Assembly (NCBI RefSeq): GCF_006345805.1
Contig: NC_043001.1
Coordinates: 126,790,001-126,854,000 of the forward strand
Source of the DNA: Octopus sinensis
Taxonomy: Eukaryota
DNA length: 64,000 bases
Reading direction: 5' to 3'
Under the pieces are notes generated by a model that saw nothing but the letters and a program-made list of their open reading frames with translations, ran no database searches and was not told where the DNA came from. This document shows, one piece after another, positions 4,555 to 33,420 of this stretch. The position numbers were made by a program, and so were the translations under genes. Every line of letters starts with the position of its first letter. The first letter of the stretch is position 1.

Positions 4555-4701
4555 CTGTAAATATATAAATATAAAAACTGGACAGCTTTCATTTTAAAAC
4601 AATGAAATAAATACAGAAATTTCAGAGAGCGAGAGTGAGAGAAAGAGAGAGAGAGACAGACAGAGAAAGAAAGAAATCAAATGCCTCACCATTTCTTTAG
4701 A

Positions 4702-4807
4702 TTACTCAGTCTTTGCAAGTCTCTCTGCTGCAAATCGGATCAGTCTTTGAGCCAGAATTGAACGTTTGATGTCGTCGCTTGATATGTCACTACGTTTTTT
4801 CTTGCCA
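4702..4807 (-). CDS. Neuropeptide precursor, last coding exon: (S)GKKKR-SDISSDDIKRSILAQRLIRFAAERLAKTE*
   Basis: Acceptor attttag|t, phase 2; amidation/cleavage signal GKKKR, second KR site, TAA at 4702-4704. Exon continues to a GTGAG donor (exon 4690-4807). Confidence 0.85.
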
Positions 4808-6863
4808 CTAAAATCGTAAGCAAAACTAAGTGTAAAAAAACCAGTGTAGGGAAAAAATGTCTGGTTACTAAAATTTTATCAAATTAAGCGGAAAGATCTC
4901 GCCAGTAATTAATTTTCACTTTTCAAATCAAAAGCTGTTGGAAAGATGTGTGTTTGTGTGTGTGTGTGGTGTGTGTGTGTGTGTGTGTGTGTGTGTATGT
5001 GTGTGTGTGTACTTACCTAAAAAATATAACAGTGCAGCATCTCTTTTCTTAAATATGATTAATTGTTTAAGCTAAGATTACAAATTTATTACCAATTTAT
5101 AACTACGGAACTAAGATTATGTTTATAGCTTACAAACGAAATCGAAACCGTATCATGAATTAGGGACATTAAAAAGTGATTATTATCTATAAAAAAACAC
5201 ATTCGATATTGTTCAATTTTATAATCGTTATAGCTCACTGGATCGCCAACGAATGTTGTACTTTCCTGTTATTTGTGAAAGGTCTTTGCCTTAAGTTATA
5301 GAAGCCAACCTGTAAAAGGGATATTAAGTTGCCCCTTCCCTCAGGAGACTCGAGATAACATCTTGGACAAATGGTAGCAATCTATCTAGGCTACTCATCT
5401 AGGTTTATGCTGAATTCTAAAGCCAGGCAAAACTGTTGGACAAGTGTTATGTATTCCCTTCAACTGTGGATTGAGGATGGTGGCTGCTCTCAATATATTA
5501 TTGGTATTTTACTATCAAGACACTAGGTACGACATTAGACCAATTCTCCCTCAATTCTCCTGATGCAATAGAATATCATTGTACTGCGTAAAAATGGAGC
5601 ACTTATAGATTTACTTGTCCTTCGCATCATTCATAGTAAGCCTGCTTACATCAACATATCAAAGCAGTAGCAGCGATCGACGGATGCTCTATTTCTGTTT
5701 TTCAAAGGCTTTTATTAGGCCGATTTGATAACTGTTTAGTTTTAAACGAAATGTAAAAGTATGACATGAAATAGAACCTACATTGCCAGCGCAACTTGCC
5801 AATTTTCGACTATCTGTAGAATTTGCTATAATTTAAGTTCATTTTCATTTTTTGGATTAGGTATTAACTTACTCAGCCACAACTACCACCAATACCACCA
5901 CCTACACTACCACCACCACCATCGACGGCACAACCACCACCGCTACTACTACTACTACTACTACTACTACTATCCTGTGGCGATTGTACCGATACTGCCA
6001 AGAGCTTTTGTATAGAAAGAGATAAGGATATAGAAAATAATTCAATATTAATCACGAGATCGACCAAGTGCACAAAGTCATCATGTACGTGTATGTGTGT
6101 TTTATGCGCACATGTCTCTGTATGTGTTATATATAAGTGCGAACTTCAATTCAAAGACTGTTGTATGTATGTATGTTTGTAATTATGTATGTATGTATGC
6201 ATGTATGTATGTATTTACATATGTATGTATGAATGCATGTATGTATGAGCGCTTAACAAACCGTGAAACGGTCAGGTATGACACTTCTCTTTTGTTTTCT
6301 GTGCATCACAGTTAGAGAAAAATGTGTCTACATGTTAAATATTTCTCTTAAAGTCAGGTCTTCTAATATTTATATTTATTTCAGTGTTTCTGACTCACAC
6401 TGTTTTATGCATAATATATCTGTTAAAGACGACTCGTCAAAAGCACAATTATATAAACTAAGCAATCCACCACAGTTATAGCCTAATTTATACCTGCTTT
6501 ATATAGCAGCTGAATATTAGTGATTGAGAACGAGTATATATCTTAGAGGAGAGGTCAACAATCCGTGAAATGATTCATAAAAAAACTCCACTTAGATTTT
6601 CTGTTCATCGAAAGCATGGGACCGGTTACATGAAAGGAAGAACTTGAAATATAAAGAACTAGTTAGAAAATGGCAGGAATAGAGGCTTCTAACTGATGTG
6701 GGTTGCCATGGGTTAGCAGCTAGGTCTATTATGTCCTGCTTAGCTCATTTGACTTTTAGCTTTTTTTTTTTTGTCACTTACCCTCATCGTTTGCGTCGAA
6801 TTGTTTGTCGATGTAGAAAAGTTGGGAGGTAAGAGATTATATGTATATATATATCTATATATA

Positions 6864-7022
6864 GTAAAGTCAGTCGTTACATCAAGGCGGATGTTTAATG
6901 TTACTACTAGTTTAATCCCAGGTAATCTGCACTCGCACCAATAACCAGCTGGCAGGGAATCTGCCTGGGGTTAAGCTAGTAGTAACATTCAACAGCCACT
7001 TTGATATATCGACTGACTTTAC
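6864..7022. mobile_element. Foldback MITE
   Basis: TA-flanked; TIR gtaaagtcagtcg../..cgactgactttac; inner 28-bp inverted repeat 6897-6924 / 6962-6989. Confidence 0.7.
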
Positions 7023-7089
7023 TATTTAGTATAGTTACGACTCTATCTCAAGAAGAGATAGAGTTGTAACTAATTTGATTATATATATA

Positions 7090-30877: not shown

Positions 30878-30957
30878 TATTATTATTATTATTATTGTTG
30901 TTATTATTATTATTATTATTATTATTATTATTATTATTATTATTATTATTATTATTA
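30878..30957. repeat. (ATT)n microsatellite
   Basis: Seen directly; a second tract lies at 32969-33015. Confidence 0.95.
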
Positions 30958-32968
30958 CCTTTGTACAGATTCTAACGCTGGAAATGTACTACCGTGTCAG
31001 CTGTTCGCTACCAGTGTACTAAGGTAATTCCCCTTATTTTTCGAGCACCTTCCGGAGTTTTCGAGCGGTTCCAAGCAGTGCTGTTTTCTGCAAGTGTTCT
31101 AACCTTATTGTAGCCCTATCTGTTCCATGTATTTGATTTTTTTTACACACTGTTCCCAGGGCTCCGACAATTATTGGTACCACTACCACCTTTTTCATTA
31201 ATCACAATTTCTTTACCTCCCAAGCTAACCTATCATATCTATCGACTTTTCTTTCTTTGGCTAATCGTTGAGAGGACGCTGGTGTTGCCTTGGCCTAGGT
31301 TTGTGCTCTAGTATGTATATATATTTTTTATTACGAATGCAAAACAACACCACAGAGGAATCGACGTAAGCTTGAATAATAAACCGCGATAGGTGAATCG
31401 CGATATGGTGAGGGATTACTGTATTTAAATTATCGCATACCTTCTTGTCAGCTGGGTATGCTATATCTATGATCCAGCATAGTTTGGTTTCTTTCTCTAT
31501 TAAGACTATGTCTGACTTCCTATTCTCTGTCTTATGGTCACACTGAATCATAAAATCCCACGGGATCTTTGCATTATCATTTTCGATTATGCCTTCGGTG
31601 TTGTGGTCGTACCAATTATTTCTCTGTGAAGTCCATACTTGTTGCAAAGTTTGCAATGGACAAGCCTTGCTATATTGTCGTGGCGTCTCTTATATTCCTT
31701 CAGGGTTAGTGGCATACATTGGCTGGTAATATGCCATACGGTTTCACCGTTTTGTCTACAAATTCTGCATTTATCACTTTCTGATGTGTTGTTTACTCTG
31801 TATTTTATGTAGTTTATTCTTTGTGCTTGCTCTTGGACAGCACAGATTAGAGCCTCCGTTTTAAATCATTATATGTCATCCACAGCCATCATTTTTCTCT
31901 GTCTGTCTTATCTTTAACATCCCTATAAAATTGTCCATGCATTCTTTTCTTTACCAATCTATTTTCAGTTTCAATCGTTTTCAATTGATTGTACAATGCT
32001 TTATCTTTGCAATCTTTCATCCTACACAAGGCTGACCTTCTTACTTCTCATAATAGCGTTTCTGTGGCATTTTTTTACATACCATTCTATGTTGTTTTCT
32101 TCTGTTGTAATGCTGTGTTCGCATCCAATAAGTCCTCTTCCCCCTCTTTTTCTTGGTACATACAGTCTGCCTGTGTCACTTTTTGGGTAGAGTGTCCCAT
32201 ATCTAGTTAGCAACTTCCTTGTCTTTCTGTCTAAGCTGCTTAGTTCGTCTACTGTTCATGCGATCACCCATGCTCCATATCTAAGGAGTGAAACTGCCCA
32301 GGTGTTGACAGCTTCAATCTTATTCTGTCCATTAAATTTCAACTTAAGGATCAGTCTCAGTCTGCGCAAGTACTCCACTTGAAATTTTTCTGTCGTTTCT
32401 TTCTCCATCAATTCATCCATTTCCAAAATTCCCAAGTACTTATAGCCCGTCTCTTCTATCTGCTCCATAACCTCCCCCGACGGTATCGATAGCCCGTCCA
32501 TACATTTGATTTTGCCACTCTTCAAGACTAACACACCACACTTTCTCAGTCCGAACTCCATTTTGATATCAGCACTGAAAATATACATCGTATCGACGAG
32601 GGAATTGACTTGGTTTTCATCTTTACCATAAAGTTTGAGATCATCTATGAATAACAAATGGTTGCCTTTTTGTTGGCGGCTTTTGAATACATACCCAGCT
32701 TTTGCTTTCCTCAGCATCAGTGTTAGTGGTATCAAGCACAGTACAAAGATCAGTGAGAATGGGCAGCACCCCCTGGAAGATGCCCCTCCTGATTTCTACT
32801 GTCCCTAAACTTCTTCCGTATGCTCTTAAGGCCGTCCTCCAATTCGCCATACTTTTTCCAAGCAATCGCTCAAAATTCCATTATCCAAGAGATCATATCG
32901 TACGCCTTACGATAGTCGGTCCATGACATGGCTAAGTTACTTTTCCTCCTCTTGAAGTCTCTAAGTAC
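30958..32968 (-). mobile_element. R4/Dong-like non-LTR retrotransposon, 5'-truncated, copy 2
   Basis: RT motifs RRGIFQG and HLLFIDDLKLYGK, INTWAV-like VNTWAVSLLRY, LYVPRKRGGRGL, WDFMIQCDH..RKSDIVL; flanked by (ATT)n on both sides. Confidence 0.85.
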
Positions 32969-33331
32969 ATTATTATTATTATTATTATTATTATTATTAT
33001 TATTATTATTAGTATTGTTATTTTATATTAGTTTTGTCTATATTATATTTTACGAATCTTGGAAACAAGTGGCGCTTAGCGTTTAATAATTATTAACTGC
33101 TAAGCACCACTTGATTCCCCGAATCCGAGTTTTCTCTAAATATTGTGTGTAAGAGATGTGATTAATTTCAACAAGCTATCGCATTAATTAAAACAAAGTT
33201 AAATGTATCATGTGTCGGAATTTTAAAATGATCTACACGTTTCTGTATAACAACAACTTGCAATAATTTTTATGAAAGCAATTTCTTAGTTATGACGTTA
33301 TTAAAAATAATGCAATGTAAAAATTGCTTAC

Positions 33332-33420
33332 CTCAATTCTTCCTCTGGGATATATCGTGCATTTACAAGAGAAACTAGCACCATGCCAACAATGCTAAGT
33401 ATTAAAATGTGTCGTGTCAT
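33332..33420 (-). CDS. Neuropeptide precursor, first coding exon (signal peptide): MTRHILILSIVGMVLVSLVNA/RYIPEEEL(R)
   Basis: Acceptor ttgattttag|ATG and donor AG|GTAAG; 89 nt, ends in phase 2. Basic n-region, hydrophobic h-region and V-N-A cleavage motif. In frame with the downstream exons. Confidence 0.85.

Follow-up and report, generated by a model that had tools for sequence, protein, structure and literature searches.

The Octopus sinensis orthologue of the lophotrochozoan QSGamide/PXXXamide (invertebrate PTH) gene: three peptide cassettes between common first and last coding exons

Described genes of the QSGamide/PXXXamide family

PXXXamide, a peptide originally reported from Sepia officinalis (Zatylny-Gaudin et al., 2016, cited after Xie et al., 2020), was shown to be the ligand, invertebrate PTH (iPTH), of insect orthologues of the PTH receptor (Xie et al., 2020, PLoS Genet, PMC7224569). 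Its orthology with QSGamide has been stated, the name "QSGamides" standing for the Cys-containing forms that occur in annelids, molluscs and brachiopods (Thiel et al., 2021, PMC8557429). Here we analyze a stretch of 64,000 nucleotides (nt) from the genome of Octopus sinensis (contig NC_043001.1, positions 126,790,001 to 126,854,000; hereafter the window, to which coordinates refer unless another contig is named) which, judged by sequence profiles and gene architecture, carries a member of this precursor family. The gene consists of five coding exons, all on the minus strand and spread over approximately 29 kb. In the genomic DNA, three symmetrical cassettes, denoted A, B and C, lie between a common signal-peptide exon and a common C-terminal exon, which matches the alternative-exon layout of the family.

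Such an architecture is ancient in lophotrochozoans and has been described before. The S1 Table of PMC7224569 contains two or three alternative transcripts built in this way from Lottia, Crassostrea, Lingula, Phoronis, Capitella and Pomatoceros, and differential splicing of the Crassostrea gigas QSamide3/PXXXamide gene yields either QSamide or PXXXamide, with peptides detected by mass spectrometry (MS) (Réalis-Doyelle et al., 2021, PMC8398477). As the genomic layout of the octopus gene would allow, the oyster gene places a Cys-containing QSamide or a PXXXamide between common first and last exons; it differs from the octopus gene in its larger number of PXXXamide cassettes, the existence of separate QSamide1 and QSamide2 genes, a GRRKR junction and a tail that is not conserved.

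Among cephalopods, PXXXamide gene 1 of S. officinalis has the GKKKR junction of the octopus gene, a similar tail and a signal peptide of the same MTR...RY style (MTRNLLVVVLVAILVSTLANG|RY), the N-terminus being almost identical in layout. Its transcript 2 encodes a peptide of type B that is a clear orthologue of octopus B (28/37 identical residues), and transcript 1 encodes one of type C (TSSDQRIAEL...), which ends in PEEI-amide, with the name-giving Pro at position -4, whereas octopus C ends in VDAI-amide; there is no A-type Sepia transcript in the S1 Table of PMC7224569. The same table includes transcripts 1, 2 and 3 of Octopus bimaculoides among the iPTH/PXXXamide orthologues. Re-derived from O. 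bimaculoides genomic DNA, these correspond to exon 1 (e1) spliced to A, B or C, respectively, and then to the last exon; they are not marked as "found" in the way the oyster transcripts are, and some of them may be conceptual splices. Thus, publications on the sister species and on other lophotrochozoans already cover the gene with its three products and the design with alternative exons, and the gene in the window is an ordinary orthologue of the published octopus gene.

In insects, iPTH of Tribolium castaneum shares with octopus C the N-terminal core S-D-Q-R-[ILV]-A-E-L and the Gly-basic amidated end, and activates the receptors iPTHR1 and iPTHR2 with half-maximal effective concentrations (EC50) of 63 and 413 nM, respectively (PMC7224569). 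The listed insect genes, unlike the octopus gene, mostly encode the Cys-free type only, Zootermopsis transcript 2 being an exception. Outside insects, receptor activation is reported only for a tick, in a 2026 preprint. The relationship to vertebrate PTH, PTHrP and TIP39 is confined to the presumed class of receptor, the protostome cluster-B/PTHR-like class-B receptors that couple to G proteins (GPCRs) being orthologous to the PTH/glucagon/secretin receptor group; the octopus peptides display no detectable sequence homology to vertebrate PTH, and iPTH and vertebrate PTH are less than 12% identical (PMC7224569). "PTH-like" is a receptor-based name and not a statement of peptide-family membership.

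Exon architecture and family assignment of the octopus gene

All exons were read from the window DNA and spliced by script. Coding exon 1 (33332-33420, minus strand) starts with ATG, encodes the signal peptide MTRHILILSIVGMVLVSLVNA and the short spacer RYIPEEEL, and ends in phase 2 at the donor GAG|gtaagc. The N-terminus comprises MTRH, a hydrophobic core of 15 residues and VNA|RY, where the signal peptide would be cleaved, followed by R-[FS]-KR or SVKR at the start of the joined cassette, so that a signal peptide, a short spacer and a dibasic site stand in the order that is usual for the family. An acceptor directly abuts the start codon (ttctctcatttgattttag|ATG, that is, tttag|ATG; window 33421-33445), and the same arrangement is seen in O. 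bimaculoides and in the second gene copy described below; accordingly, one or more non-coding 5' exons are probably situated upstream of exon 1, at higher coordinates.

Cassette exon A (24064-24177, minus strand; 114 nt, phase 2/2; ttacag|ATT...GAG|gtatag) encodes a peptide of the QSGamide type with C-x4-C, (R)FKR-QLADMRAAEYRALMALSRNITCTQVACGLVDIEK(S). Cassette exon B (23007-23126, minus strand; 120 nt, phase 2/2; ttacag|ATC...CAG|gtacag) encodes a second QSGamide-type peptide, (R)SKR-QTGDIKTAEYQAWLALGGIVPPGCVEVACGVVDVHA(S). Cassette exon C (17212-17310, minus strand; 99 nt, phase 2/2; ttcag|CGTTAAACGG...GCAAT|gtaggt, with ttcag|CGTT on the acceptor side) encodes (S)VKR-TSSDQRIAELKALLAMSRVVGHGQLDVDA(I), a Cys-free PXXXamide/iPTH-type peptide of 30 amino acids (aa). 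In the last coding exon (4702-4807, minus strand; acceptor tttag|TGGC), the first base completes the Ser or Ile codon of the preceding cassette, the amidation/cleavage signal Gly-Lys-Lys-Lys-Arg follows, and the tail SDISSDDIKR-SILAQRLIRFAAERLAKTE continues up to the stop codon (window 4702-4780, with TAA at 4702-4704). The acceptors are of the polypyrimidine-AG kind, the donors are GT, and the introns range from 0.9 to 12 kb.

The original prediction, made from the raw sequence, had named exon 1, A, B and the last exon, with GT-AG sites and phase 2/2 for A and B, all of which are present in the DNA, and scripted splicing reproduced its two precursors letter for letter: e1-A-last is 102 aa and e1-B-last 104 aa long, and these carry Gln...Ser peptides of 35 and 37 aa, respectively, followed by GKKKR. 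It counted, however, two paralogous peptide exons where there are three, exon C having been missed, and it took the gene to be hidden, although RefSeq models exist for both O. sinensis (LOC115211866, "uncharacterized", 135 aa; P0001) and O. bimaculoides (LOC106873782, 137 aa; P0003). These models, which read e1-A-C-last and e1-B-C-last, respectively, led to exon C: both contain an additional segment, VKRTSSDQRIAELKALLAMSRVVGHGQ[LI]DVDAI, placed after the A or B peptide and before GKKKR, which was located in the window by tblastn (approximately 17211-17312), after which the exon limits were read from the DNA. The e1-C-last splice would release TSSDQRIAELKALLAMSRVVGHGQLDVDAI-amide, a peptide of 30 aa without Cys. 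Exon 1 matches residues 1-30 of both models, and P0001 agrees with the window in its residues from exon 1, from cassettes A and C and from the last exon.

Word-indexed homology searches with the 102-aa product (e1-A-last), which retrieved P0001-P0006, and with e1-C-last gave no matches outside Octopus, a method that could not reach the Sepia, Lottia and insect members; therefore, family membership was tested with purpose-built profiles. Two hidden Markov models, of the QS type from 11 Cys-containing and of the PX type from 15 Cys-free non-octopus peptides (S1 Table of PMC7224569), were run on every stop-to-stop frame of 20 aa or longer in the six-frame translation of the window (2085 in total). 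The QS-type profile recovered exon B (E=5.8e-17) and exon A (E=9.8e-13), and the PX-type profile recovered exon C (E=1.4e-13). Each profile also matched the other type of cassette more weakly; all remaining frames of the window had E>1 with both profiles, so that no fourth cassette exon was found among them.

The alignment conveys the same picture. A and B share KR-Q, D, AEY, C-x4-C and G-V/L-VD, motifs that had been noted in advance, and agree with the QSG-type family in pQ-x-[AG]-D, C-x4-C-G-[LV]-x-D-x3-S and the Ser-Gly-basic end. Exon C contains the S-D-(Q)-R-[ILVM]-A-E-[LI] core close to the N-terminus of the peptide (encoded TSSDQRIAELKALLAMS...). The last exon opens with GKKKR, the Gly-plus-basic signal for amidation and cleavage, which thus comes after whichever cassette is joined to that exon. 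The initial assignment to the iPTH/PXXXamide family was thus right, and the S1 Table of PMC7224569 gives these very A and B products for the O. bimaculoides orthologue.

The orthologous locus of O. bimaculoides (LOC106873782; locus L016) contains all five exons, open and with the same splice sites, encodes the same three alternative peptides, and shows none of the frameshifts that had been proposed as a refutation of the gene. Identity at the nucleotide level is 100% for exon 1, 97.4% for A, 100% for B, 98.0% for C and 96.2% for the last exon, with 9 mismatches over 528 nt in total (98.3% identity), compared with 87.5% identity (12.5% divergence) over the approximately 20 kb of intron that could be aligned by blastn (Fisher p=2.4e-19). 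This contrast indicates that the coding exons are under selection and are not chance frames. The residue changes between O. sinensis and O. bimaculoides are RFKR versus RSKR before A, N versus K in A and L versus I in C, along with K/R, R/K and R/Q in the tail.

The original prediction further proposed an exon duplication that diversified the ligand. A and B are indeed paralogous and are served by a single signal-peptide exon and a single GKKKR/tail exon. Only 16/35 residues are identical between A and B, compared with 19/35 between A and Lottia gene 2 transcript 1, 19/35 between A and Crassostrea gene 2, 20/37 between B and Lottia gene 1, and 17-20 of 35-37 overall between A or B and the limpet and oyster peptides. 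Because A and B are no closer to each other than to these peptides, their duplication is not shown to be recent; we do not claim a recent or cephalopod-specific event, pairwise identities being uninformative for peptides this short.

A Leu/Arg-rich amphipathic tail after the amidation site is also seen in the Sepia, Lottia, Lingula, Phoronis and Capitella precursors (S1 Table of PMC7224569). The tail could represent another conserved peptide derived from the precursor, or an element for sorting.

Isoforms and the proposed choice of the amidated ligand

Very probably, the window gene is the O. sinensis orthologue (LOC115211866) of the lophotrochozoan QSGamide/PXXXamide gene in which the choice of splice selects the amidated ligand. 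Under this scheme, exon 1 would supply the signal peptide, and the last exon would supply Gly-Lys-Lys-Lys-Arg and the conserved amphipathic tail; each cassette would open with a dibasic site of its own (R-F-K-R, R-S-K-R and S-V-K-R in A, B and C, respectively) and encode one peptide, A and B giving rise to pGlu...C-x4-C...Ser peptides of the QSGamide type and C to a Cys-free SSDQRIAEL...Ile peptide of the PXXXamide/iPTH type. As the last exon brings the Gly-Lys-Lys-Lys-Arg signal, a cassette joined directly to it would gain Gly and with it C-terminal alpha-amidation, and any combination of cassettes should be translatable, each of them being in frame and a multiple of three in length. Alternative splicing would thereby pick the amidated ligand that is secreted by a cell. 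Cleavage by furin or prohormone convertases (PC), pyroglutamate formation, disulfide bonding and amidation are predicted by standard prohormone rules and by analogy with the oyster MS data. Signalling may proceed via PTHR-like (cluster B) class-B GPCRs, by extrapolation from insects only; cluster-B (PTH/glucagon/secretin-type) class-B GPCRs have been reported for molluscs, with the O. bimaculoides genome among those searched.

Several observations weigh against this interpretation. The Pro at -4 is absent from all three peptides: octopus C ends in D-V-D-A-I-NH2, with Val at -4, and A and B end in E-K-S and H-A-S, respectively. However, Pro at -4 is only "mildly conserved" in PXXXamide/iPTH peptides, in which SD is highly and the Gly-basic end strictly conserved (PMC7224569), so that the Val of octopus C is not disqualifying, and A and B lack the Pro because they belong to the QSGamide subtype, the PXXX subtype being represented by exon C. 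None of the isoforms matches a Pfam-A family at E<=10. The exact spliced isoforms with A, B or A+B and the exon-skipped form had 0 matches among approximately 15 billion proteins, and the only RefSeq models of the main locus carry two cassettes (A+C and B+C), so that a strict one-cassette choice is not demonstrated. As for the receptor, a 7tm_2 Pfam scan of the genome (98 matches, mostly to an intronless array) did not isolate a PTHR-like orthologue, and the QSGamide/PTHR pairing is assumed and unproven in Lophotrochozoa (PMC8557429).

The gene models of the three species differ in the cassettes that they use. Exon A is included in P0001, exon B in P0003 and P0004, exon C in P0001 and P0003, and the last exon in P0001-P0004 and P0006. 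P0002 (O. sinensis LOC118761766, 102 aa) maps to contig C11358, which carries the second gene copy, and P0006 is a 64-aa exon-skipped product of O. bimaculoides. P0004 and P0005 are two "hypothetical" models of Octopus vulgaris (GCA_951406725.2, OX597818.1; locus L015), neither of which was accepted as valid: P0004 is a mis-built ab initio model with a spurious N-terminal extension of 69 aa and a span of 103 kb, and P0005, likewise mis-built, reads A-B-C of the second copy without exon 1 and the last exon and runs into intronic sequence, its start and end residues corresponding to the intronic window positions 25023-25073 and 15497-15586. Both were used solely as evidence for the existence of the exons in O. 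vulgaris.

These models bear on the best surviving alternative, namely that the gene encodes a multi-peptide precursor in which the cassettes are mostly included together (A+C, B+C or A+B+C) and only the last one, C, is amidated, A and B being released as free acids (...EKSV, ...HASV or ...VDIE). We consider this a possible reading, although a distinctly less probable one than ligand switching. Both P0001 and P0003 join two cassettes; the single phase of the cassettes and their lengths in multiples of 3 nt keep all combinations in frame; the long introns (0.9-12 kb) leave joint inclusion sterically unhindered; and tandem peptides occur in oyster "transcript 4", which is marked as found, and in Pomatoceros transcript 2 (S1 Table of PMC7224569). 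Conversely, the Ser|Gly-basic design of the A and B types has been kept from brachiopods to annelids and here needs a direct splice to the last exon, the S1 Table of PMC7224569 gives single-cassette forms for the transcripts of Sepia, Lottia, Lingula, Phoronis and Capitella, and single oyster QSamide and PXXXamide peptides have been detected by MS (PMC8398477). In A+C or B+C isoforms, the peptide upstream of C would have Val-Lys-Arg after it and become the free acid ...EKSV (A) or ...HASV (B), and only C would be amidated. The amidated A and B products of the original prediction thus stand as sequences but exist only when C is skipped, and C is joined in the RefSeq models. Ligand switching and a multi-peptide precursor are not mutually exclusive, and isoforms of both kinds may exist.

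An observation on the intron between A and B touches on cassette usage. At window positions 23174-23287 (minus strand), upstream of exon B and 48 nt from its acceptor, there is a perfect tandem duplication with a unit of 57 bp, which blastn finds as a single copy in O. bimaculoides, in the second copy of O. vulgaris and on the O. sinensis contigs that carry the second copy. Given its proximity to the branch-point/polypyrimidine region of exon B, the duplication could influence the usage of this exon.

The remaining alternatives fare far worse. The UniProt name of P0006, "Corticotropin-releasing factor domain-containing protein", would make the gene a precursor of the CRF/diuretic-hormone type, and the helical, basic C-terminal tail looks loosely CRF-like by eye; this conserved tail is probably the reason for the label. 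Neither P0006 nor any of the isoforms matches CRF or any other Pfam family at E<=10, and the QSG/PXXX profiles recognise the cassette peptides with E-values between 1e-12 and 6e-17, so that a CRF-type precursor is highly improbable and effectively refuted. Membership in the vertebrate PTH family (Pfam Parathyroid) was rejected on the same Pfam result. Finally, the proposal that there is no gene, just chance open frames and chance splice-like dinucleotides in AT-rich repetitive DNA, of the kind that a window with 34% GC, many microsatellites, decayed retroelements and common short open frames might supply, has a negligible probability and is refuted by the profile E-values and the exon-versus-intron conservation, with identical splice sites in O. 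bimaculoides, the copy-2 locus of O. vulgaris and the second O. sinensis copy, and independent gene models in three species, also standing against it.

A second gene copy and the genomic surroundings

A genome search showed that all five exons are also present on the unplaced O. sinensis contig C11358 (47,992 bp), at 44204-44296 (exon 1), 33839-34003 (A), 32789-32956 (B), 25834-25932 (C) and 18121-18234 (last exon), with parts of the gene on contigs C8327 and C11597 (copy-2 loci L001, L004-L006, L009-L011, L013 and L014). These three contigs are mutually 98.4-99.97% identical and hence represent one locus, referred to here as copy 2. They are 93-96% identical to the introns of the window and 95-99% identical to locus L015 of O. 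vulgaris, which is a complete copy with the same variants, and O. vulgaris additionally has a window-like exon B (in P0004) on the same chromosome as L015; it follows that copy 2 is a true paralogue. Copies 1 and 2 are 93-96% identical, compared with 87.5% between the species orthologues, which dates copy 2 to after the divergence from O. bimaculoides. In this respect, the O. sinensis lineage, with its second, diverged gene copy, differs from the O. bimaculoides gene.

All frames and splice sites of copy 2 are intact. Relative to copy 1, exon A has 0/114 nt mismatched and no residue changes, exon B 6/120 nt and 5 residue changes, the last exon 5/106 nt and 3 residue changes, and exon C 15/99 nt, with 10/33 residues changed; exon C of copy 2 has diverged faster than the copy-2 introns. 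Exon C has GGT (Gly) as its first full codon in copy 2 and GTT (Val) in copy 1, which turns SVKR into GKR. A QSG-type peptide encoded upstream would therefore have Gly-Lys-Arg after it and become amidated also in isoforms that retain C, unlike its counterpart in copy 1. We tentatively raise the possibility, doubtful as it is, that a young paralogue re-wires which ligands are amidated and that, together with combinatorial cassettes, there might be more PTHR-type ligands than in any published list. As a side observation, copy 2, with its GKR change, is the only part of the locus for which we found no description, and it is seen on unplaced contigs.

Within the window, the minus strand carries decayed retroelement remnants in intron 1 (29559-32795) and in the last intron (7101-7568). 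One frame, at 32256-32795, weakly resembles a reverse transcriptase (RVT_1, E=6.7e-4, short of the Pfam cut-off), and the long frames adjoining it have no Pfam match. The window as a whole has 34% GC and contains TA, TG, TATC/AGAT and TATG microsatellites and a TTC/CTA block (50335-50664); no other convincing protein-coding gene was seen between 34 and 64 kb. Outside the window, contig C10 harbors, at approximately 79.83-80.58 Mb, a dense array of class-B (7tm_2) receptor genes, several dozen in number and seemingly without introns, with open frames of 550-730 aa; this lineage-specific GPCR expansion, which dominated the 7tm_2 scan, is unrelated to the neuropeptide gene.

The biological addition made by the main locus is small, given that the O. 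bimaculoides orthologue with its three peptides is already contained in the supplement of the paper on the deorphanisation of insect iPTH and that the design is documented in oyster. The result has value for calibration, in that reading of the raw sequence alone found a multi-exon neuropeptide gene dispersed over 29 kb and placed it in the right family. If copy 2 is real and expressed, a young paralogue might alter which ligands of this family become amidated in O. sinensis.

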